Positions 8,131 to 42,159 are shown, numbered from the stretch's first letter. The stretch is 64,000 nucleotides of DNA from Entomortierella parvispora E1425 (GCA_020891255.1 BQFW01000001.1:62001-126000); one strand, 5' to 3'. Numbers and translations: made by a program. The notes: generated from the letters alone by a model not told the origin.

Positions 8131-8322
8131 ATGAGAAGAAGGTGTGCCTCTTGCGCGATTGGTGATGAACAGGTCGATATCTCCCCACTGGGACTCGTTC
8201 TGGAGAAATTGAGCGGGTAGGCGGTCCATCTATGGTAGGGAAAAAAAGTATGGCGGCAGTAAATGACCACCGAAATCGCAACAAAAAAACATATTAAGAG
8301 GAGGGCGATGGTTGCCAGCTTC

Positions 8323-8940
8323 TGGTGTTTTTGAGCTGCCGTGTTGCAATCCATCAGCAGGTTAAGTCGCTGTGGACTGCATTGCTGCAGTCCCAGTGAC
8401 ATCAGTTCCCATCGAGTGGGTTCGGACCTTTCACCAGTCTCACAGACCGAGCAGGGAAAGTGTTTTTCGGGTATGGACCATGTGCAAGGATGCGCAAGTG
8501 TCGTCCTAGTTCCTGTCCGTGCAAATTCTTTTGGAACCAGACGCGTCAGGAACACCAGTTCCCATTGAAGGGTTCGGGCTTGTCACTTTCCCCCATGTGT
8601 CAGTCTACAGCGCTGAAAACCAATAAATGAAAAGGGGGAATATACAACTCTTGGTGTTTTTGAGCTGCCGTATTGCAATCCATCAGCAGGTTAAGTCGCT
8701 GTGGACTGCATTGCTGCAGTCCCAGTGACATCAGTTCCCATCGAGTGGGTTCGGACCTTTCACCAATCTCATAGACCGAGCAGGGAAAGTGTTTTTCGGG
8801 TATGGACCATGTGCAAGGATGCGCAAGCGTCGTCCTAGTCCCTGTCCGCGCAAATTCTTTCGAACCAGACGCGTCAGGAACACCAGTTCCCATTGAAGGG
8901 TTCGGGCTTGTCACTTTCCCCCATGTGTCAGTCTACAGCG
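8323..8940. repeat. tandem direct duplication of ~290 bp (8323-8612 and 8652-8940), 39-bp spacer
   Basis: Direct comparison shows six transitions plus one substitution/indel site between the copies. Confidence 0.95.
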
Positions 8941-20852: not shown

Positions 20853-23800
20853 TTATCCAAGATCGCATTGGAACCATTCGCCAGTGCCTTCTGCCACTCG
20901 GGTCTGGGCTCGGCTGCTGAGGTGCCTCTGTCGGATCTGCATCAGAGCCAGCTCCTCGATTTGAATCTGATACAAACTCTTCTTTTGGTGTCGAGCCTTC
21001 AGCAACATGTTTCTGTCCCGCAGTTGTTGGTTCTGAATGATGGCAAAGGAGGAGAGCGTCGAAGTCGAAGTCGAGGTCGGGGACGAGACTGGTCCGATCA
21101 GCGCTGACATGCCCGAGGCAGAGAGCGCGGTTGCGGTCGAGATGGGTCCTGTTGATTCAAAGGACGACGCATTGTTGGGCGCACGAGCGACAGAATCCCG
21201 GTTCTGATTCGAGTGGGAGTTCTGGTTCAGCGCAGGAAAGTCATGAGTCGACGAAGGTGAGGTCAGTAAAGGATCCGATCCAGAATTGGAACTGCCCTCA
21301 GACCTGGGGTACATTTGACTCTGATGTCGAGTGACTGCTCGCAGTGGTTCTGGGATGGCATCCATTCTCCAGGGGGCCTCTGTGAATGCTCGCTCCACTC
21401 CACTTGGACGTCTATAAAAGAAACGTAGGGGAGAGAGTTAGTTCAATATAAATGATCATTACGATTTCCTTAATCTTTAGCCACAAGAGACAGATCCATT
21501 CTTACAAGGTCTCCTTCACAGGCTTGGAGGTCGCCATGGCGACTCTTGGGACCTCTTTGGGCTGAGCTCGAAGCAAAGCGAGCTCACCCTGTTGAATATC
21601 CAAAAGCGAAGGCGTTCCCACAGGACTGCCGCTAACGATCTCAACTTCAGAAAATCCGCCCATACTGCTGCTCCTTCTCAGCAGTCCCGGCGAGTGTCCA
21701 TGCTCCGTCCGACTGCTATCCATGGCGCCACTAGGCACGACCTTTGCCCAGGCTACAGGTGAGGGAGAGCCCATCGAGTCCAGGGATGGCGATGACACTT
21801 CTGAATGCTGCTGTTGTTGTAAAAGTCGTCGACGCTCCTTTTGTGACAGCTTGGGTGCCTTGACTCCTGTCGATATTCCTGCGGAACTGTGTGATGACGC
21901 CAGACCTTGTTTCTGCTCCTGCTCCAAAATCTCTCTCAAGGATGGCTTAGGTGGCATGACCATCATGGCGGACGAAATTTCAGACGATGCTCCTCCCTCT
22001 GCCCCTGCTTGCGCCAATGAGGCGTTTCCAAGTCCCTCGGCAACATTCTCTATAGAATCGCGAGAGCGATCTTGCAGACCAGTGACTGGAGCCCAACTTG
22101 TTTTCCTGATGGGCGGCTGAGGGATGTCTCGCATTTCACTCGTATGTGCACTACTAGCAGAGAGTGTCGGCCAGTGGGAATGAGCATCTTTACTACCGGA
22201 AGCTTCAACTGTGCTTGGACCATGTCTGTCCGTTCGGATCTGCTCTGCGGATAGTGTACGAGTAGCCATTGCAGGAGCAGACGAAATTGTCGGAGTAATC
22301 GGCGTCGAGAGAGAAGAAGGTAAGACAGTTGCATTTTGTGATAGCTGCACAGACGGTTTACGAAGCTGCTGCCCAGGCGGAAAAGTCGGGGTCGACTCAC
22401 TCCTGAAGAGTGGGGTCAGTGGGCGGTAGTATTCTGTCCCATCCAGTGCTATTTTCTTCCGCATCTCTTCCACCGCAGCCTTGTCAGGAAGGTAGCCCCC
22501 TGATCGCACGAACGGCATGAGCGTGTCCTGTTTCTTGTTCAGAGCAGCCTCCAGCAACAAAAGGATCTCCTCATCTACATCATCCAGCCATCTAATGTTC
22601 GCGGGTGAAGTCAATATATAGATGTTAGCTTTCATGTTTCTTGAATGCGTAATGAGTGAAGTGAACCAGATGGTTCGAATCTTACCTCTGATCCAGAGCC
22701 ATCTCGAGGTTGTCGCAAAGATAATCCACACATGTTTTCTTGAGCGCATCGGCGGCATACATGAGCGCGATTTCCAAAAAGCTGACCACAGTCTTGGCTC
22801 GAACTGAGTGAAAGACACACGACGCATATTAGATACAAAGCTCAAGCCTCAACGTATGGGCAACGTTCAATGAATTACCTTGCTCGCCCAACACCTGTTC
22901 ACAGATCTCCTTCAATCGATCCATCAAGAACTCGTCTGCAATCTTGAGAACGCTTATGACAAGCTGAAGCAAATCATCCATCTCTTCTTTCTCTGCGGAT
23001 AGAAATAAGGTGGAAAGTATTAGCATCTAGTTTTCCAAGCTCATATCTCTATTAACGTTTACTCCAAGGCACGTTGACATACCGGCATTATTGAACATTT
23101 CTGGTCCGCAGTCCGTATAAATGTATTGCATTACGAGTGTCATTGATTCCAAATCTAGCTGGTCCATGTTGACTTCCAGGATCCTTCTATCGGGGTCGAC
23201 AAGGCCAGTATGTTTAGCAGGCAGACGACGAATGTCCTGTCGGTCTCGAGTCCACTCGTTTGTCCTGACAAGCATAGCGTTGAAGAACGGCGAGCGATGA
23301 CCTAGCACCATTTGGTGGGCCAATAAATGGTTGTCGTTTTTCAAGAGCAGCTTCACATCAAACAATCCCGCAAACAGTGCTGGGGATTCGATCACCTGCG
23401 CAAGATTGCTGAACAAGCTGGCGCTGCAAATGTGCGTGAAAGAGTACTGGAGTGCTGCCTGCAGCGTGGGTAAAGCCAACTCGAGAGCAAGATGATAGAG
23501 TTGCTGTCGTACTTTGGCAAAGTCTTGCTTTTTGGCATTTGGAAGGTCGAGAGCGTCCCAGATTGGATCAAATCGATCGCTATACAGGAATTGGAGTAGC
23601 AGCACCGCTGTTGTGAATTCCACGTCAAGGATGATGGTATAGAGTGGGCGGCCTGTGCCATCAAATTCCGTGGCTGGGACAACGGACACCAAAGAGCCAA
23701 CGGTGGTCTTGAGTCGGGGTGACTCCACAAAACATCTCCGGAAAACATGACTTCTAGATGCGAGAATGATCCGATGGGCTCCAATGGTTCGCTTCCCAGC

Positions 23801-25912
23801 TTGAATCTCTACATCAAAGAGATGGCTTCCTGACACTGACTTGTCAAAGTTCCCAGTCCTGGTAGACGAGTCTAAAAGCGGTATCAAGTCGTGGTCCCAA
23901 CTTAGCTCAAGATCCTGCCAGCCGCGCGTGCTGATCTTCCAAGGATTTGGTACAACCTTTTCCTCGTCGTCATCCTCGTCGTCTCCAATGTCTGCCTCCA
24001 CCTCGATACTTTCGCCCTGATTCTTTTCATTGTCCTGGTATATATGGAACTGCGACAAAGACTGTTCGAGATCTGCTCCCAAGGCTCCCGGCCGGACCGA
24101 TACGGGTGTCAAGGTTGGATCTGATCTGATAGCTGCCCATGCTCCACTTGGATTGGCATGGACCTGCACGATTTTATCCAAGTGAGGCACCCTATAAGAA
24201 TAAAAAGAAGGCAGCATTAGCAAAAACATTCTGAACGGTGGTTCATTTCATAGCATAACGGTGTTTCTGCAACATTTACCTCTGCCATTTCACATTTCGT
24301 CCCAATGAGGCACCTTTGTTGGTGCCGATATAAACATGTCCGCCTTTTGTCAACAAAATGACGGATCCGTTTTGGCCAAGTGCAAAGTCGATGGCCTGAG
24401 TTCTATCACCTCCATATGTCCATACTCTCCTTGGTCGGTCGGGCATGGCGATGGATAAGAACGGAATAGAGTGGTTTGAAGGCAAGGTCCCCAAAGTTAC
24501 ACTCGAGTCAACTTCAGGATAGCTCCAAACGTGAATGTCACCCCAGCCTGTCATCATCCCAAACTTGTTTTCAGAGCAAGAGATCTTCCGAGGACGATTC
24601 TCATTCACGACACGAGGATAGTTGAGCTCCGAGAATCCATCCGGATATGGGAAAAGCGAGAATGAGACTTTGTGGTATGCGTACTTGTAAAAGACCACGA
24701 CGTCGTTGGAGGACATTAAACATGCCGTTGCATTGTCTGAGGCAGCCACTTGCATAATCAATCCTGGAGGCATCGAGGCTACTTTTCGAGGGCCGAGCTG
24801 AATGTCGCCTTTCCTTTCATATCCAAGCTGTCCATAGTTGAATCCAAACGTATAAAGCTCAGTTTCGGTATGGACGACTGTATGCCATTTGGAAGCCGCC
24901 GCTCCTTTCACAAATAGCTTGGCAATGCTCAGTAGGACCCTCTTTGGTGAATACTGGATCGGGTCCTGTCCGTTTGGAGGAATCTCTAACGCATATCCGA
25001 GTTGCCCAAATTTGTTGTTTCCGAGTGTGTAGACCTCCCCTTTGCTGGTGACAAGAACTGTGTGGTCCCTTCCAAGGGCAGTTGTAACGACTGTTCCTGC
25101 TATGCCCGTAATAGGAAACGGACTCGCCTGCATCTTTCGATCCAAGCCGAGTCGTCCACTGGTTCCAAAACCCCAGACCTTGGCGCTCTGTCCTGCCTCG
25201 GACGTCGCCACGACAGTATGGAATTTGCTCATGGACAGCTGATAGAGGATCGATTTGGCAGCCTTGACCCTTGGGAATGTGATGACACTGGTCCGGTAAG
25301 GGAATCGAACGAGCTCTGGCATTTTTCGATCATCTCCGTCATTGTGACCCAGCGTAAAGTTGGAGTTGGAACCCCATGTGTAGAGAGCGTCGCCAGGGCA
25401 AGGACCTCTCTCCAGGATAACTGGTAGCGTGGCGTGACATACATCGAAGGGAGTATTCCTGTCCTTGTCCTAGAGTTTGCGCAGCAAGGGACCAAGAGAA
25501 GAGTGAGTCCGGATTGTTGATTTTTTTTTGTTGTTGTTGCATGCATCTAGTATCCTGTGAGCATGCTGACGACATATACCTCCAGTGCTATATTGATGTC
25601 CTTGTGCCGCAACAAAGCGAGGGCAATACGAAGATGTCCGAGATAAAGGGCCCTACAAAGACAACAAAGAGTACAGGGGAAAAAAATGATCTTTAGCTAT
25701 GCATTCAACCTTCCCATGGCAGACAGGTTGTAATGTAGCAATGAAACCATGAAATCCTACCGATGCAGAGCTGTCCATCCAGACTCTATATCCTTTTCGT
25801 TGACATTGATCTGGGGATGTTCCAGCAAACGGCAAACGAGCTGAAAGTTGTTGCCCGCGACTGCGCGATGCAGGGCCGTGGTTCCATTGTCGTCCTTGAG
25901 ATTGACATCCAT
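20853..25912 (-). CDS. ankyrin + RCC1-repeat + tandem BTB protein (IBTK / S. pombe Btb1-like), multi-exon
   Basis: Ankyrin (GTTALHRAV, D.ESGWTALHR), RCC1 repeats (YTWGSNSNFTLGH, GRLG, GNNKFGQLG, FGFNYGQLG), two BTB domains (AHRIILASRS..F; AHQMVLGHRSPFF) and a C-terminal SL.QIQ.EE motif. The start codon is uncertain. Confidence 0.87.
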
Positions 25913-26394
25913 CGCAGGGTCCAACTGCAGAGGACGGGGGTTCTGAATGGAGTTTGTGAGGGGAAGAGAAAGAGAGCGCATGAGCGCGTGCGAGGTTAAG
26001 TGAGCAGGACCATGGCCATGGGTTGTCGACATTGAGCGCAGGCGAGGAGCGAGATGCGGATGACAGACAAGCGGAGGGTGGAGAAAAGAAGAAAAAAAAA
26101 AAAAAAAAAAAAAAAGACCGAAGGACCGACTGAACTGAACGAAAGTAAAGGGCGGCAGATGCGACGCCACCAAATTCATCATTCCACGTCACCTGGACCG
26201 AAATAGAGAAAGACACCATGTCCCAGGCACCTTCACTTTCGCAACTATTTATTTCCACACGCTGGCACTCTCGAGTCGGCATCAACGATCTTTATGTAGT
26301 GGAGCACATTAGAAATATATATCAAGTTAAACTACATAATTACATATGTAAAAAAAGTGTCGTTCTTGTCGCTCGGTCCTCCTTGTCCTCTTTC

Positions 26395-31942: not shown

Positions 31943-32495
31943 AACCTTCATCACCGATCAACATTGTTTCGGGCTCCTCTGTATCATGTAGTAAGTCATG
32001 GCTGTAGATCCAGCGCGATCTTAATGTGGATCCCGCTCACTTCTTCCCCTCTACAATCCATGTCAGAACAAGACTGAGAGGACAGAGCACTGATGGGCAC
32101 TGATGGGTTGTGGTCCAAAAGCGTGTGTGTGGTTGTGCGCGCAGGGTGCTGCCGTTATTTCCAGCATGTTCCTTTCCAACAATGTAGCACTGTGGGACAC
32201 AAACAAGAATGATCGTTTTGATGCCTCACCTCGCTTCTTTTTTTTTTTTTTTTTTTTTTGCTTTGAAACTGACTTTCTCTCTTTGTCTTGATCTTTCTAT
32301 ATGCACAAACACGCAGACACTAAGCCTACCCTACCCTGTTCTCAGAAACAGCCTCTTGCTCCTGTCATGATTCTCCACGAAAACACCATACCTCAGCTCA
32401 GCCTTCTCAGGAACCAACCACGATATGACTATATTCGATGGCACCAGATTTCAGCAAGTCCTGGATCAGTTTGCGCATGATCAGAACGGTGTCGC
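31943..32495. repeat. left arm of a ~553-bp near-perfect inverted repeat (partner 37586-38139)
   Basis: Reverse-complement comparison shows identity throughout the compared sequence apart from the length of the poly-T/poly-A run. Confidence 0.95.
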
Positions 32496-32844
32496 TCTTG
32501 AAATATATGGAGACTCGGCCTACACCGCCAATGGCCACGTTTTGATCGGCTATCGAGGAAACGGACTGCCTCCAGACCAGATCGCATTCAACCGCGTCAT
32601 GTCCAGTCTACGTGCCACGATCGAGTGGACCTTCAAACACATCGCGCAACAGTTCATGGGAATCGACTTTCCTCCGACTCATCGACTCCTGTCCACATGG
32701 ATCGAAGGTCACTATAGATTCGCATCTTTGTTTTCCAATATCCACACATGCTACAATGGTGGAGAGGTGAGCACCTATTTCAATATCAATCCTCCCACAG
32801 TACAAGAGTACATTAGTGCAGCAGCAATGAGCGTTTTATTTTGA
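32389..32844 (+). mobile_element. 5'-truncated PIF/Harbinger-type DDE transposase (DDE_Tnp_4 C-terminal half)
   Basis: SGTNHD...IYGDSAY...FNRVMSSLRATIEWTF...SNIHTCYNG...YFNINPPTVQEY matches the G..HD / GD.AY / N..MS..R..IEW.F catalytic motifs of Harbinger-family transposases. The N-terminal half is absent. Confidence 0.85.
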
Positions 32845-32892
32845 GATATTAACTTAAATTATATTACAATGAAGAACTATAGGACGTCAAAT

Positions 32893-34191
32893 TCATTTTT
32901 TGAAGGATGCCATCATTTCAGCGAAGGCCTTAGCTTGCAGCATGAGGGCCTCTGCCGTCTTAGCTGCAGCCTCCGCCTGAATCTTGATCGCTTCCGACTG
33001 ATTCTTCAAAAAGGCGGAAAGCTCAGCTTGTTGAGCACTCTGGGCAAGATGTCGCCTTTCTTCCGCTTCCATCTTTTCCTGGAATCTCCTCCTTTTTTCG
33101 ATACGATCTTCCTTCCATTCATTGAGATGTTGCTCCTGTAATTTGAAGTGTTGCTCCTGCATTTCTGCTTGTTTCGCTCCATTCGCCATCGCAGCCTGCA
33201 TGTTCAAAACCAACTGGGCTTGAGCAGTCTTTCTCTTCAGAGCAGGCGTTCGTGGTTGGTGCGATGTAGTACTTGACTCCGACTCTGTTCTAGATGAAAT
33301 TCGACCAAATTGTGCAGGCGAAGGCGAAGAATTACCTTGTAAGTCTGACACCAGTTCATTAAGTATGATATCCAGTGGACGTTGTCGTGGTGTTGTTGGC
33401 GTTGGTGTTGCGGATCGAGATGAGCTTGGGGACGCAGATCGAGACGAGTTCGGGGTTGATGCTGAAGACAGGGCATACCGAGGTCCAGCTCGAGACCGTT
33501 CCAAGAGTTCTAAGCCATTCGCCTTATTGGTTTCCACGTGTTCCCTTGCCAACATCATTTGATTGCTCCGTTGCGAGTTTGCCTCTCGGGCTGCAAGTTC
33601 ATGCTCATATACAGATTTGCTGTACTTTAGGACCTCAGTGAGCTCAGGGTTGATTCCTGTACCCGTTTTGAGTCGACACTCATATTCTTGATAGGCTTTG
33701 GAGAGGGCATTCCAGTTCTCCCTACAGGTCCGTGTTGTGACGCCCTCAAAAACTCTTGGTTGTCCTGCCTTCTCTTGATCGTCATCATAGCGATGAAGCT
33801 GCACAACGACCAACCCCCAAGCTTCTTCTGTCTTACCATAGCCAGCCGCGAATGGCCTCACAACCTCCAACACCTTGAGAAGCTCTATCTGCAACGTGGA
33901 TTTCCTCTGTTTATCCACAGGTACGCTCATAATGTCGGTGGAGGCTCCAATTTCCATTGCAAGAAGGCCGTCAGCGACGTCCGGCATATTTCCCGTCTCC
34001 TCATTTGCCTCGTCTGCATGGACCCCAGAATCAATGTTGGACAGCGATGTATCGTTTGATATGTTCCCAATTCCTTGGTTGAGATCAAATTGGTCTAGAT
34101 TCCCTTGATTCCCGTCGTCGAGGTGGTTCATGATAGTGGGAGGATGCGAAGGATCAGTGCGTTCTGCCTTCATCTCGAACGCGATGCGCAT
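32893..34191 (-). CDS. Myb/SANT-like (trihelix) DNA-binding protein, accessory ORF of the PIF/Harbinger element
   Basis: An uninterrupted frame of >400 codons lies tail-to-tail with the transposase (48-bp gap). The motif LLKVL...RPFAAGYG...AW..V...L...TTRTCRENW..L..Y...LKTGTG is followed by a low-complexity linker and C-terminal coiled coil. The start could be 34191, 34173 or 34131. Confidence 0.72.
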   Translation of the reverse strand: MRIAFEMKAERTDPSHPPTIMNHLDDGNQGNLDQFDLNQGIGNISNDTSLSNIDSGVHADEANEETGNMPDVADGLLAMEIGASTDIMSVPVDKQRKSTLQIELLKVLEVVRPFAAGYGKTEEAWGLVVVQLHRYDDDQEKAGQPRVFEGVTTRTCRENWNALSKAYQEYECRLKTGTGINPELTEVLKYSKSVYEHELAAREANSQRSNQMMLAREHVETNKANGLELLERSRAGPRYALSSASTPNSSRSASPSSSRSATPTPTTPRQRPLDIILNELVSDLQGNSSPSPAQFGRISSRTESESSTTSHQPRTPALKRKTAQAQLVLNMQAAMANGAKQAEMQEQHFKLQEQHLNEWKEDRIEKRRRFQEKMEAEERRHLAQSAQQAELSAFLKNQSEAIKIQAEAAAKTAEALMLQAKAFAEMMASFKK

Positions 34192-34472
34192 TTTATTCTC
34201 ACACAAGCCACACGGTTTTTTTCTTACTTCTCCCACTAGTGGCTTAGGAGGAGTCGGAACTTCCAGTACATGAAAAATATTTTAAGGGGTGGGTTTTGTT
34301 GGCTGGAGCTCATCACTGTACGTGAAATTCGGGCCACACGAACACGAAAAAAAACACGAAATGACATCCCTCCATCGTCATGCCAGGTTTGATACGAGGC
34401 TGCAAGTGCCGACCGTTGTTCTTTTTTTTTCTCTTTACCTCTCTACATCTACACACCCAGAAACATCTAACA

Positions 34473-34712
34473 ATGCCCTACCCCGACATCAAAGATCTCC
34501 CCGGCTCCGTTCAAGAGCACCTCCCCAAACACGCCCAAGAGATCTACAAGGAAGCCTTCAACCATGCTTGGGAGGAATACAAGGATCCAAAAGACCGCCA
34601 AGATGAGCACTCGTCGCGCGAGCAGACGGCTCATAAAGTAGCCTGGGCTGCTGTGAAGCACAAGTACGAGAAGAATGAGAACACTGGCAACTGGGTTGCA
34701 AAGACAGAGTGA
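34473..34712 (+). CDS. chaB: ChaB-family protein (79 aa), bacterial-type, intronless
   Basis: MPYPDIKDLPGSVQEHLPKHAQEIYKEAFNHAWEEYKDPKDRQDEHSSREQTAHKVAWAAVKHKYEK closely follows the ChaB consensus MPY....LP.SV...LP.HAQ.IY..AFN.AW..Y.........REE.AHKVAWAAVK..Y.K. The start context (ctaacaATG) is fungal-type. Confidence 0.93.
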   Translation: MPYPDIKDLPGSVQEHLPKHAQEIYKEAFNHAWEEYKDPKDRQDEHSSREQTAHKVAWAAVKHKYEKNENTGNWVAKTE

Positions 34713-35231
34713 TTTGAAGTCCGGATCCTCTCCTCAAACCTCGCATCTTTCCATATAAAGCAAAAGTTGTTTCCCAAAACATGCTGTCTCGTCGCATGCT
34801 TCACCTGTCTGTATATCATATAAAGACTGTGTGAGATTGACGACAGATATATAGCTCTGTTTGAAACTGGCTGGGACTTGTCATTGTTTAGCATGGCCTC
34901 CATTCAAATTGCGACTGTACTATTGGAATAGCCAATGGTTGTTGGAAGACGGAATGCTCTAAATAGACGATGGTTCTTGGTTCAACCCTTTGGGAACACG
35001 ACAGCATCTTGAGTAGTAGCCCAACGTCACAAGAGAAGCAGGTAAAGAAACCTCTCTTTAGCAGTATCAAATAGGCACAGAGCCTGCGTTGAGTGGGGCT
35101 CACAGATATGCTTCTCATGGGAGCGGGAGATACGAGAGGATACTTCTTCACCCTCCAAAAATGGCGTTGAGGGCCGGGAGTATATGGCCTTGCAGGATTC
35201 AGGAATTCGTTACGTCACGTGACGATTCCGT

Positions 35232-35392
35232 GCGGGATCCACACTAAGATCGCTGGATCTACAGCCATGGCTTCCAACATGATATAGAGGAGCCCGAAAC
35301 AATGTTGATCGGTGATGAAGGTTCAACATGGATGGACATGAACGGGAGGATGTCTAAGAGTATACTGATGGGGTGTGTGTGTGGTTGTGCGC
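35232..35392. repeat. third, rearranged partial copy of the inverted-repeat module
   Basis: 35232-35364 is a diverged direct copy of 38046-38180. It is fused to ctgatggg..gtgtgtgtggttgtgcgcgc, which matches ~32100-32142 in the opposite module orientation. Confidence 0.85.
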
Positions 35393-35677: not shown

Positions 35678-36036
35678 CTTGCGACATGGTTTATTGCTGT
35701 GGCCTCTCTTGCAATGACGACTGTGTCGGGCACTCGTTCCGGCAGTCAACTCGTTGTTTTCTGAGATGGCGAGCACAGCGATCGCGTCTGGAAACCTCCG
35801 GTGATTGCTGAGCTTGCTCTCCGTGATGATATGTACGAGTACCATAGCTGCGTCCCTTGCGACGTGATGCTATCTCTGTGGCCTCTCTTTGCAATAACGA
35901 CTGCGTCTGGCACTCGTTCCGGCAGTCAACTCGTCGTTTTCTGAGATGGCGAGCACGACGATCGCGCCTGGAAACCTCCGGTGATTGTTGAGCTTGCTTT
36001 CCGTGATGATATGTACGCGTACAGTAGCTGCGCCCG
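35678..36036. repeat. tandem duplication with ~180-bp period (two diverged units)
   Basis: ctgtggcctctctt(t)gcaat...cactcgttccggcagtcaactcg...ccgtgatgatatgtacg is repeated at 35697 and 35876. Confidence 0.92.
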
Positions 36037-37585: not shown

Positions 37586-38139
37586 GCGACACCGTTCTGA
37601 TCATGCGCAAACTGATCCAGGACTTGCTGAAATCTGGTGCCATCGAATATAGTCATATCGTGGTTGGTTCCTGAGAAGGCTGAGCTGAGGTATGGTGTTT
37701 TCGTGGAGAATCATGACAGGAGCAAGAGGCTGTTTCTGAGAACAGGGTAGGGTAGGCTTAGTGTCTGCGTGTTTGTGCATATAGAAAGATCAAGACAAAG
37801 AGAGAAAGTCAGTTTCAAAGCAAAAAAAAAAAAAAAAAAAAAAAGAAGCGAGGTGAGGCATCAAAACGATCATTCTTGTTTGTGTCCCACAGTGCTACAT
37901 TGTTGGAAAGGAACATGCTGGAAATAACGGCAGCACCCTGCGCGCACAACCACACACACGCTTTTGGACCACAACCCATCAGTGCCCATCAGTGCTCTGT
38001 CCTCTCAGTCTTGTTCTGACATGGATTGTAGAGGGGAAGAAGTGAGCGGGATCCACATTAAGATCGCGCTGGATCTACAGCCATGACTTACTACATGATA
38101 CAGAGGAGCCCGAAACAATGTTGATCGGTGATGAAGGTT
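37586..38139. repeat. right arm of the ~553-bp inverted repeat (partner 31943-32495)
   Basis: Reverse complement of 31943-32495. Confidence 0.95.
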
Positions 38140-38143
38140 CAAC

Positions 38144-38600
38144 ATGGATGGACATGAACGGGAGGATGTCTAAGAGTATAGGGGAGTATTTCTCAAAAAA
38201 ATGGAGGAGTGCGAGCGTTGTATGATTCGCGTCGCTGAGGATGGGACTGAAAAACTCGTCCTTCCAGACGACTACAGCCCAAAAGAAGGGGAGCGGCCAA
38301 TCATCGTCTACACTCACGACGAATCAAGATTCTATTCGAACGATGGCAAGAGCAGTACCTGGAGGCCAGCTGGAGAGATGTTACTACGGAAGAAGGGTCA
38401 AGGTCTCTCGCTCATGGGTCCGAGTTCATTTCAGAAGTTTGTGGACCACTATCCTATGAGTATTTGGAAGCTGGAGTGGCAGTGGTAGAGTCATCTGTTG
38501 AATTCCTCAACTCCGGAATAAAGCGCGATGGATGGTGGACAGGAGACGACATGGCGAAGTAGTTTCGGAAGGCAATATCCATTCACAAGAAACATCCCAG
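38144..38600 (+). mobile_element. degenerate DDE transposase fragment, IS630/Tc1/mariner-like family with HDES motif
   Basis: MDGHEREDV*EYRGVFLKKM...IIVYTHDESRFYSNDG...W...GE..LRKKGQGLSLM, then a frameshift near 38414, then SEFISEVCG...RDGWWTGDDMAK*F..AI.IH. Stops at 38171 and 38561. Confidence 0.75.
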
Positions 38601-40335: not shown

Positions 40336-42159
40336 ATGTCACGTGCATTGTCACCAACAAGCCAGGAAAGCAACAAGTCGCCCTTCTTTCTTTCTACTTT
40401 GTCATCCCCTCTGCGGTATTCCCTCCTACTACGACGATGTCCGACCGTACCTTCGAAAGCGACAGTGCCGAATCTAAAAAAACAGTGCCTATTTCCTTTG
40501 TTGAAACCCTATCAAGTGGTGCGGTGCCTCGCCGATTTGGGGTTGACCTTCAATGCGGACGACCTTGAGAATCCCACGCAACAAAAGACTATGGAGGTTT
40601 GCGAAACCTTCATGCATCTGGCTCAAGGGTTCACGGAAGATGAAGCTCAACTCAAGGATGCCTTCCAAATGCGTCTCAGAATGAAGTAAGAAGAAGACAA
40701 ACAAGACGAAAGTTCCGCAGATCTTCTTCTTCCTCACTCATACACAGTACGCTAATATGATCATATCCTCTCACTGCGCATGTAGGAGTTCGTGTTTGAA
40801 TGTGCCCTTCGCTCGACTGTGCGTATACTCATCAATGACGTAAATATCGCGTGCATCTCTCCGTTGCTATCAAGTGATTTTAACATTTGTTGATTTTAAT
40901 GCTCGTAGCTCAAAGATGATGCACGATGTTGGGATTTTGGATTTTCTTCTCTTGATCTAACAAACCCGGAGGCAGGCCGGGCGCGGAAAATGATCGGCGC
41001 TTTGGTGAACTTCATCAAATTCAAACAGGAAAGGGAGGGTGCATTCTTTAAAATGCTGAAGGAGACGGACTGCATCCTGGAGAGATACACACAACTTCAA
41101 GAAGAATACGACACAATGCTTGCAACTGTGGGAACGATCAAGTAAGCTGAGACTTTATGAGTATTTCTCAGATTTCTCAAAACTGGGCCATGTTTCTTTT
41201 CCTAGTTATAAAGTACAGTGTAAGTCGCACATTAGACCGAATTTCGGTCCATTGTGCGACTTTGCCAGTCTGTTCTTCGAAAATCAATTCAATGGTGACC
41301 TTTGTGGCCAACTTTTTGATATGTGGATCTCAACAAAAAAAAGGAAAAAAAAAAAAAAATGGAAAAAAGTGAAAAAAAATTTTGATTTTGACATATCAAA
41401 AAGTTGGCCACAAAGGTCACCATTGAATTGATTTTCGAAGAACAGACTGGCAAAGTCGCACAATGGACCGAAATTCGGTCTAATGTGCGACTTGCACTGT
41501 ACTCTCTAACACATTCCATTCTCTTTTTTCATGATTTTAGACTATCGCGGTTTGGCCAGGACTGAAAAGGAGGATGCCACGGCTCACTTGAACGCTCTAT
41601 TATTAGAGAATGGTGAATTGATGGCTGCGGACGTAAGAGTCCCCGTCTTTTTTTTCTTGTTCTTTTTGCAGGATTCTCCACGGTTACTGATTTTGTAATC
41701 TTCTTCCTTACTTTCATAGAGTGAGTTGGATGGGCTCCTTGAAAGAGCCACTGAAAAGTTGAACAAGATGCAATCAAAGTTGTCGATGTCCCCGAGGGTT
41801 TGCAGGAGGAGCTATCTCAGCTACCCATCAACATAACCGGTCTTCAAATGCAGTCAGTGCAGTTACAGCAAGATATTGATGCCCGATCTAGGGTCATTAG
41901 TTGTATGGAAACTGATGTAACAAAAGCACAGGGAGTTCAGGACGTCCTGAAGGACACGGTTGGCCTTCAAAAACAGCTTGACGATGAGACTACGGATCTT
42001 AAAACGATCCCATCGGCTATGGAGGAGTGTTATCTATCGGAGATAGTTCCACTTCGTCGAAGAAAGGAAAAGCTGCGGAATTCTTTCCTGAAAGCGGAGC
42101 AACAGTTGGTAAATCATCAACAACGTTGTGGCCTGTATCGAACTTCTTCAAACTTTTAA
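40336..42159 (+). pseudogene. NUF2: Nuf2-like kinetochore protein gene, divergent and frameshifted, with a MITE in one intron
   Basis: Calponin-homology segment LFPLLKPYQVVRCLADLGLTFNADDLENPT. After splicing it reads RLSKMMHDVGILDF, (frameshift ~40944), SSLDLTNPEAGRARKMIGALVNFIKFKQER, which matches Nuf2 G..DF...DL..P...R....SA..NF..F.E.R. A coiled-coil tail follows with further frameshifts near 41775-41795. Confidence 0.62.
41216..41499. mobile_element. 284-bp Tc1/mariner-type MITE with 109-bp terminal inverted repeats and TA target-site duplication
   Basis: TA|CAGTGTAAGTCGCAC...GTGCGACTTGCACTG|TA. The arms 41216-41324 and 41391-41499 differ by one base and flank a 66-bp A-rich spacer. Confidence 0.93.

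Follow-up and report, generated by a model that had tools for sequence, protein, structure and literature searches.

A ChaB gene of proteobacterial origin in the nuclear genome of the fungus Entomortierella parvispora

The window analysed here is a stretch of 64,000 nucleotides from the fungus Entomortierella parvispora E1425 (GCA_020891255.1, BQFW01000001.1:62001-126000), and our subject is a gene of 79 codons within it that encodes a protein of the ChaB family. This gene is physically integrated in the nuclear fungal genome, the proteobacterial origin of the fungal ChaB genes is firm, and amino-acid change in them is constrained by purifying selection. We consider it rather probable that ChaB is here a resident, functional nuclear gene that descends vertically from one old transfer, the likeliest donor being the lineage of Mycoavidus, a Burkholderia-related endosymbiont that lives inside the hyphae of Mortierellaceae.

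A sequence-only reading of the window had described an intronless open reading frame (ORF) of 79 amino acids that matches ChaB from end to end, and the description holds. The Pfam profile PF06150 (ChaB) scores 87.1 bits against a cut-off of 27, and its positions 1-60, out of 60, align with residues 9-77 of the protein encoded by the following feature.

34473..34712, plus strand: ChaB coding sequence (CDS), ATG at 34473, TGA ending at 34712, 79 codons and a stop, intronless

The enterobacterial equivalog profile NCBIfam NF007136 / PRK09582 gives 108.9 bits, below its cut-off of 120: the window protein is thus a member of the family and not an equivalog of E. coli ChaB. The E. coli protein has the same family, length and fold, is about 60-64% identical over residues 2-74, and its structure, PDB 1SG7, is matched with an E-value (E) of 5.7e-24. 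The fungal gene differs from it in being eukaryotic, with fungal codon usage, and in having neither a ribosome-binding site nor a cha operon: no chaA or chaC was found beside the window gene, and the Mycoavidus context is likewise FUSC-ChaB-RecC, not a chaA/chaBC locus.

The fold was judged by three helices packed on a small beta-sheet, as in 1SG7. The AlphaFold2 model of the window protein (predicted local distance difference test 87.9) contains helices at residues 11-16, 19-35 and 49-64 and a two-stranded sheet formed by strands 65-67 and 74-76, and Foldseek aligns it to 1SG7, the sole significant PDB match, with E 2.9e-7 and template modelling scores of 0.80/0.84. Residues 38-49, DPKDRQDEHSSR, retain the acidic loop that joins helix 2 to helix 3. 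Baculovirus and phage ChaB-domain proteins also use the ChaB fold as a small module, but they are distant (21-45% identity in fold matches) and frequently occur as fusions with prohead protease/XkdF, DUF2213 or gp32-like domains: the fungal protein, unlike these versions, belongs to the stand-alone proteobacterial type.

The start codon stands in the context ctaacaATG, with no Shine-Dalgarno sequence. An in-frame ATG upstream, at 34380, would extend the protein by 31 residues, a hydrophobic stretch among them; it was rejected because the orthologues start at MPY and because an RNA-like contig, described below, starts at 34430. The copy appears to be unannotated, since the exact protein is absent from a collection of 15 billion proteins.

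The top matches of the window protein in 5.8 billion protein clusters are four proteins of Mortierellaceae, from Actinomortierella ambigua (78% identity), Gamsiella multidivaricata (73%) and two assemblies labelled Mortierella alpina (71% and 69%). Intact fungal orthologues span 68-78% identity to the window copy, and bacterial and metagenomic ChaBs reach at most 72%. All fungal copies are intronless, 76-80 amino acids long, and carry a glutamine at position 51 (Q51). They lie on contigs of 4-362 kb, amid intron-bearing eukaryotic genes, with neighbours that include Pkinase, glyoxal oxidase, SNZ, LIM-RhoGAP, CLC and Spt6. The gene is thus common to at least four lineages of Mortierellaceae. 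The sequence-only reading had also held that ChaB is not a standard eukaryotic gene, which agrees with the matches: among the named close ones, Mortierellaceae are the only eukaryotes, and the Atlas clusters come from Bacteria or viruses.

Two of the orthologues share their neighbourhood.

L003:10001-10240, strand not given: ChaB of an M. alpina-labelled assembly, syntenic SNZ-ChaB
L087:1959-2198, strand not given: ChaB of the other M. alpina-labelled assembly, syntenic SNZ-ChaB

These two genes are just 85% identical in DNA, with a synonymous divergence (dS) of 0.5-0.7, and the two assemblies are probably different species under one name.

The relationships of the fungal copies to bacterial ChaBs were studied with maximum likelihood trees of 78 alignment columns, built on sets of 112, 103 and 49 rows; support is given below as ultrafast bootstrap / Shimodaira-Hasegawa-like approximate likelihood ratio test values. 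In the 49-row tree, a clade of 19 tips (92/95) contains all the fungal copies, Mycoavidus and one uncultured gammaproteobacterial group. Its core of fungi and Mycoavidus has support 95/75 and leaves the window copy just outside; in the 112-row tree, four fungal and eight Mycoavidus copies form a clade with support 97/87. Candidatus Glomeribacter and other beta- and gammaproteobacterial ChaBs fall in the same wider clade. Because there are just 78 columns, the tree resolves no further.

Among the top bacterial matches is the ChaB of Mycoavidus cysteinexigens (P0010, BBE08972.1). A profile built from five fungal ChaBs gives 160-169 bits to the fungal proteins of the database, 146 and 144 bits to two Mycoavidus clusters, and at most 139 bits to all others. 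The transfer from bacteria to fungus put forward from the sequence alone is supported by the proteobacterial clade and by the rank of Mycoavidus as the top non-fungal profile match.

No bacterial ChaBs stand closer to the fungal ones, by tree or by profile score, than those of Mycoavidus (M. cysteinexigens and Mycoavidus sp. SF9855 and HKI). The two groups share the rare states D/E5, D44 and H/R63, to which M. cysteinexigens adds N73. Mycoavidus ChaBs differ in having 81 amino acids, a C-terminal tail KKKSDV or KQKSNA, and E51. Approximately unbiased (AU) tests do not reject an exclusive clade of fungi and Mycoavidus (p = 0.45) or the monophyly of the fungal copies (p = 0.18 and 0.36); those on the 103-row set combine large likelihood gaps with non-significant p-values and are taken solely as "not rejected". 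We hold with moderate confidence that the donor belonged to the Mycoavidus lineage, the best-supported reading, though not a proven one.

Once in the fungus, the gene took on the character of its host. The G+C content at third codon positions (GC3) is 0.66-0.75 in fungal ChaBs and 0.44-0.46 in those of Mycoavidus; within the window, it is 0.67 for ChaB, 0.53-0.56 for ordinary genes, and 0.72 for an ORF similar to RPS12. Since its GC3 exceeds that of ordinary genes and comes near that of the ribosomal-protein ORF, the codon pattern of ChaB is that of a highly expressed gene. The fungal expression context that had been proposed for ChaB is supported by this composition together with the lack of a Shine-Dalgarno sequence.

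For those pairs of fungal ChaBs whose dS allows an estimate, the ratio of nonsynonymous to synonymous divergence (dN/dS) is 0.10-0.27; in comparisons between genera, dS is close to saturation or past it. In the syntenic M. alpina pair, dN is 0.07 and the ratio 0.10-0.16, and because its SNZ-ChaB arrangement is common to both members, this divergence arose inside fungi. That the gene is kept by selection, as the sequence-only reading had suggested, is supported in a comparison across Mortierellaceae; conserved synteny was found in the M. alpina pair alone.

Only two public runs, from one sample and neither of them listed as RNA, contain this DNA: X1 is DNA-like, and X2 is RNA-like, its library type being a guess. 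Run X2 yields about 24 Mb of short contigs, with zero depth in intergenic bins and adapters at contig ends. The only one of these contigs near the gene, 34430-34684, has a depth of 693, the maximum in the 5.7 kb examined, and an Illumina adapter directly precedes position 34430, which delimits a putative leader.

34430..34472, plus strand: putative 5' untranslated leader, CT/CA-rich, from the start of the X2 contig with its adapter, the library type being guessed

Strong transcription from a start near 34430, about 43 nucleotides upstream of the ATG, is likely but not proven, the RNA nature of X2 being inferred. In addition, a contig of run X1 matches the last ~50 nucleotides of the CT-rich leader (34423-34473) and continues into unrelated sequence before 34423: another locus may share the leader or promoter-proximal sequence of ChaB.

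The history that we favour would begin with one old transfer from endobacteria of the Mycoavidus lineage, before the sampled genera diverged; ChaB would then have been inherited vertically under purifying selection, with changes of neighbourhood. A single origin is favoured because Q51 is present in all fungal copies, because the window copy is closer to fungal copies than to any bacterial one, and because all show equal codon adaptation.

Several observations weigh against this history. The best trees place Mycoavidus inside the group of fungal copies instead of as their sister, and the window copy strays from the others: in the 112-row tree, it joins an AT-rich metagenome sequence, P0019, as sister to the clade of fungi and Mycoavidus (73/76), and in the 49-row tree it stands beside the uncultured gammaproteobacterial group (87/58). 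There is no synteny between genera, which fits independent insertions as well as relocation. The annotated proteomes of other Mortierellaceae are without a close match, perhaps by loss or perhaps because gene callers overlooked a short gene. The ChaB neighbourhood of Candidatus Glomeribacter is unlike that of Mycoavidus, and the evidence for expression comes from one run whose RNA nature is inferred.

Two leads were examined and discarded. P0019, on a metagenome contig of 929 bp, was rejected as an informative sister of the window copy: its GC3 is 0.19, its branch is long, an upstream gene of bacterial style lies 57 nucleotides away, and it moves elsewhere in another tree run. A one-residue insertion in the acidic loop was rejected as a common marker of fungal copies, since it differs within the syntenic M. 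alpina pair and must have arisen more than once.

If Mycoavidus-like endobacteria gave ChaB separately to different lineages of Mortierellaceae, at different times, one would understand why the fungal copies form a grade with Mycoavidus inside, why the window copy joins the other four without firm support, and why the neighbourhood differs in every genus. When five other fungal ChaB loci were compared to the window with tblastx, with flanks of 10 kb on either side or less where a contig ended, the CDS alone was matched, and neither the upstream nor the downstream flanks of the fungal ChaBs have alignable similarity beyond it. Because only the CDS is common to the loci, the flanks cannot decide between one transfer and several. 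The residues speak against several: Q51 is found in 5/5 fungal copies, in 0/9 Mycoavidus copies, all of which have E, and in 2.4% of 425 other ChaBs, so that four or five parallel changes from E to Q would be needed, which is unlikely. Moreover, the best identities of the window copy are with fungal copies (77-78%) and not with bacteria (at most 72%), the AU tests allow fungal monophyly, and codon usage has come to fit the fungal pattern to an equal degree in all the fungal copies. We regard several transfers as a possible but unlikely history, with perhaps one chance in a handful.

A somewhat less probable proposal concerns what the gene now does: ChaB could be a relic of an ancient symbiosis with Mycoavidus, adopted by the host nucleus, highly expressed in genera across Mortierellaceae even without the bacterium, and acting at the interface between host and endobacterium, with repeated transfer as a variant. 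If this doubtful proposal is true, the relic could, for example, set the cation or stress conditions that the bacteria experience.

The direction of the transfer can also be reversed: an ancestor of Mortierellaceae would have taken ChaB from another proteobacterium, and an ancestor of Mycoavidus would later have acquired it from its fungal host. The nesting of Mycoavidus within the fungal copies speaks for this direction, as does the lack of synteny between the ChaB genes of Mycoavidus and Candidatus Glomeribacter; however, support inside the nested group is weak, and the tests do not reject a monophyletic set of fungal copies. The Mycoavidus gene, for its part, lacks the fungal Q51, and its GC3 of 0.44-0.46 reflects bacterial codon usage; a GGAG ribosome-binding site lies 8 bases upstream of its ATG. 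Every Mycoavidus genome has the arrangement FUSC-ChaB-RecC, in which ChaB overlaps recC by 8 nucleotides, and this operon-like overlap is fixed in both Mycoavidus clades; ChaB is a settled bacterial gene there. That Candidatus Glomeribacter ChaBs, and further ones from beta- and gammaproteobacteria, belong to the same wider clade also speaks against a fungal source, and we hold the reverse direction to be quite improbable. Glomeribacter synteny was tried as a root for the direction of transfer and gave no answer: because the two neighbourhoods differ, synteny does not show vertical descent within endobacteria.

There remain the surroundings of the window gene to be explained. The sequence-only reading had noted a divergent Myb/SANT ORF of a Harbinger transposon about 0.3 kb away and a 553-bp inverted repeat on either side, both of which are indeed there, and had suggested that DNA transposons possibly moved or captured ChaB, which the evidence does not support. 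The relevant features are the following.

31943..32495, plus strand: left arm of the 553-bp inverted repeat, 5' part of a Harbinger element, 99.8-100% identical to the right arm
32425..32844, plus strand: C-terminal piece of a DDE transposase of the PIF/Harbinger type, matched by positions 76-131 (out of 158) of the Pfam profile DDE_Tnp_4 with E 1.3e-6
32893..34236, minus strand: second ORF of the PIF/Harbinger element, Myb/SANT-like, 447 amino acids, likely start at ATG 34131 (412-amino-acid form)
34160..35315, strand not applicable: single-copy segment bearing ChaB, Logan contig of run X1, 1156 nucleotides, depth 84.2
35232..35364, minus strand: solo 133-nucleotide Harbinger 5' terminal fragment, 520 bp downstream of the ChaB stop
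37586..38139, minus strand: right arm of the inverted repeat, truncated and inverted second Harbinger 5' part, family similarity continuing to 38180

The start of the Myb/SANT-like ORF is 237 nucleotides from the ATG of ChaB, or 341 if the ATG at 34131 is used. This ORF of 447 amino acids has no Pfam match; its language-model features match Myb/SANT-like Atlas clusters with a score of 0.90, its 412-amino-acid form is present letter for letter in the Atlas, and it adjoins the DDE_Tnp_4 fragment, so that the Harbinger label is a reasonable one. The left arm of the repeat enters the first 24 codons of the ORF of the transposase fragment. The solo fragment, 35232-35364, is 94.8% identical to 38046-38180 and 92.6% identical to 31943-32036.

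Could ChaB then be the cargo of a PIF/Harbinger element, captured or moved by it and now lying between its inverted terminal sequences? It does lie between inverted copies of the Harbinger 5' part (31943-32036 versus 35232-35323, and 31943-32495 versus 37586-38139), and within 237-341 nucleotides of the Myb/SANT-like ORF. However, copy numbers do not agree: in run X1, the ChaB segment, at depth 84, behaves like other unique stretches (73-85), and the Harbinger body reaches 190-700 and shows numerous variant letters. This multi-copy depth reaches about 34096-34133, which places the boundary of the repeat at about 34133-34160, some 320 bp upstream of ChaB, and leaves the gene in a unique island of 1.07 kb between Harbinger debris. 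Nor do the arms represent matched ends of the element, being truncated internal copies in which the transposase-fragment ORF already begins; and in four other assemblies, no Harbinger-like sequence was found in the 10 kb on either side of ChaB, some contigs ending sooner. Because ChaB is single-copy, outside the repeat boundary, and without Harbinger in other genera, insertion beside the gene explains the context better than capture: the Harbinger pieces would be later insertions beside a resident ChaB and not its vehicle, and we think it very unlikely that ChaB is cargo.

The X1 data also bear on whether ChaB belongs to this genome at all. The X1 contig covering 34160-35315 was assembled independently and has zero differences from the window, and both of its ends extend into Harbinger-derived sequence. 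A bacterial contaminant would not have ends of this kind, in fungal transposon sequence. Among the proposals considered here the most improbable is that an assembler joined a bacterial segment, for example from an endosymbiont, to fungal DNA: the unique ChaB segment is just 1.16 kb long with repeats on both sides, and the Logan contigs do not reach host genes from it, but the check by coverage that the sequence-only reading called for gives ChaB the same depth as its unique fungal flanks, its GC3 of 0.67 compares with 0.45 in Mycoavidus, it has no Shine-Dalgarno sequence and no bacterial neighbour, it differs by at least 28% from every bacterial ChaB, and its nearest copies are fungal, on long eukaryotic contigs.

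Around the island, the three pieces 31943-34160, 35232-35364 and 37586-38180 belong to one PIF/Harbinger family. The left copy resembles an internal-deletion derivative, and other genomic copies diverge from it upstream of 32390. The perfect 553-bp inverted repeat, with arms 5.09 kb apart, could mediate an inversion or be an assembly artefact.

What a small ChaB protein does in a fungus is best approached from bacteria, where its function is itself unsettled, E. coli ChaB being a "putative cation transport regulator". The E. coli protein is reportedly small and cytosolic, with a charged loop that has weak affinity for Mg2+ and Ca2+. A 2026 preprint reports that salt induces chaB in E. coli, and that cells from which it is deleted tolerate more salt and contain less Na+ (bioRxiv 10.64898/2026.05.15.725350); in K. 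pneumoniae, deletion of chaB alters metal-dependent growth and capsule production (PMC7874612). The nearest bacterial relatives of the fungal clade have ChaB either beside Hsp20 or beside BON, hemerythrin and DUF883.

L006:822-2572: bacterial locus Hsp20-ChaB-Host_attach/baeRF-DUF4404
L085:4503-6642: bacterial locus BON-ChaB-hemerythrin-DUF883

These stress-type neighbourhoods point to a general stress role for this subgroup of ChaBs and not to a cha-operon role; other bacteria have the ChaB domain in fusions with stress (YflT), STAS and Rho_N modules. It can also be argued that the function of ChaB is independent of ChaA and ChaC, because the gene is kept under selection in a eukaryote that has no cha operon.

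The window protein would be a small soluble three-helix protein with an acidic loop, suited to the binding of a partner and not to catalysis, and it would tune cation/proton exchange or the general stress response. Candidate partners are fungal exchangers of the CAX/Vcx1 type, which share the CaCA superfamily with bacterial ChaA. Most likely, fungal ChaB would act by binding, without enzymatic activity, to adjust a cation/proton exchanger or a general stress response. As M. alpina can be transformed, fungal ChaB offers a second, genetically tractable system for the study of ChaB function.

Transfers of this kind have precedents. Burkholderiales, including Mycoavidus, have been named as a main source of the genes of foreign origin, or xenologs, of Mortierellomycota, one example being NOD-like receptors derived from Mycoavidus (Ciach et al. 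2024, PMC11291939): the kind of event and the proposed donor group are the same as for ChaB, a very small single-domain gene by comparison with those large multidomain receptors. ChaB is unmentioned in the text and in two supplementary files of that paper, and a full-text search of the literature found no paper on ChaB in fungi and PF06150 in no main text. Because transfers from endobacteria to Mortierellomycota are already documented, the case is a further example and does not introduce a principle of its own. The example is clean, tiny and intronless, its donor, host and direction can be tested by a simple survey of existing genomes, and it illustrates how fungal gene callers, and screens for horizontal gene transfer that start from annotated proteomes, overlook short xenologs.

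Elsewhere the window has ordinary eukaryotic genes, with BTB, RCC1 and ankyrin ORFs in the interval 23.0-26.3 kb, Nuf2 at around 40 kb, and the RPS12-type ORF at 43.4-43.7 kb. The idea that ChaB is the sole intact non-transposon gene in some 16 kb is roughly right: among ORFs, as opposed to spliced gene models, none with a Pfam match to a host gene lies between the ankyrin/RCC1/BTB group, which ends at about 26.3 kb, and Nuf2, at about 39.4-40.7 kb. The BTB, RCC1 and ankyrin ORFs stand in a row on the minus strand at 23027-26285, an architecture like that of IBtk, the inhibitor of Bruton tyrosine kinase; their closest protein, 91% identical, comes from a Joint Genome Institute (JGI) metagenome, and the closest named match of the RCC1 ORF is from M. 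alpina, at 78%.

Several repeats complete the picture. Between the solo Harbinger fragment and the right arm, 35678-36035 consists of two tandem units of about 180 nucleotides, 89% identical, with a raised depth of 267 in 35811-36001 and ORFs on both strands that repeat the same peptides. At about 37464, an X1 contig of depth 74 has some 64 extra letters between 37463 and 37465, an insertion or deletion that separates reads from assembly. Just outside the right arm, an ORF of 95 amino acids (38201-38488, plus strand) has no Pfam match at E 0.01, and its IVYTHDESRFYSNDG stretch recalls transposases of the Tc1/mariner DDE type. A direct repeat of 216 nucleotides, 96% identical, occupies 8316-8531 and 8645-8860 with a spacing of 329 nucleotides. 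Finally, downstream of Nuf2, 41205-41333 and 41382-41510 form an inverted repeat of 129 nucleotides, 95% complementary with a spacer of 48 nucleotides, a structure that forms a long hairpin or resembles a miniature inverted-repeat transposable element.

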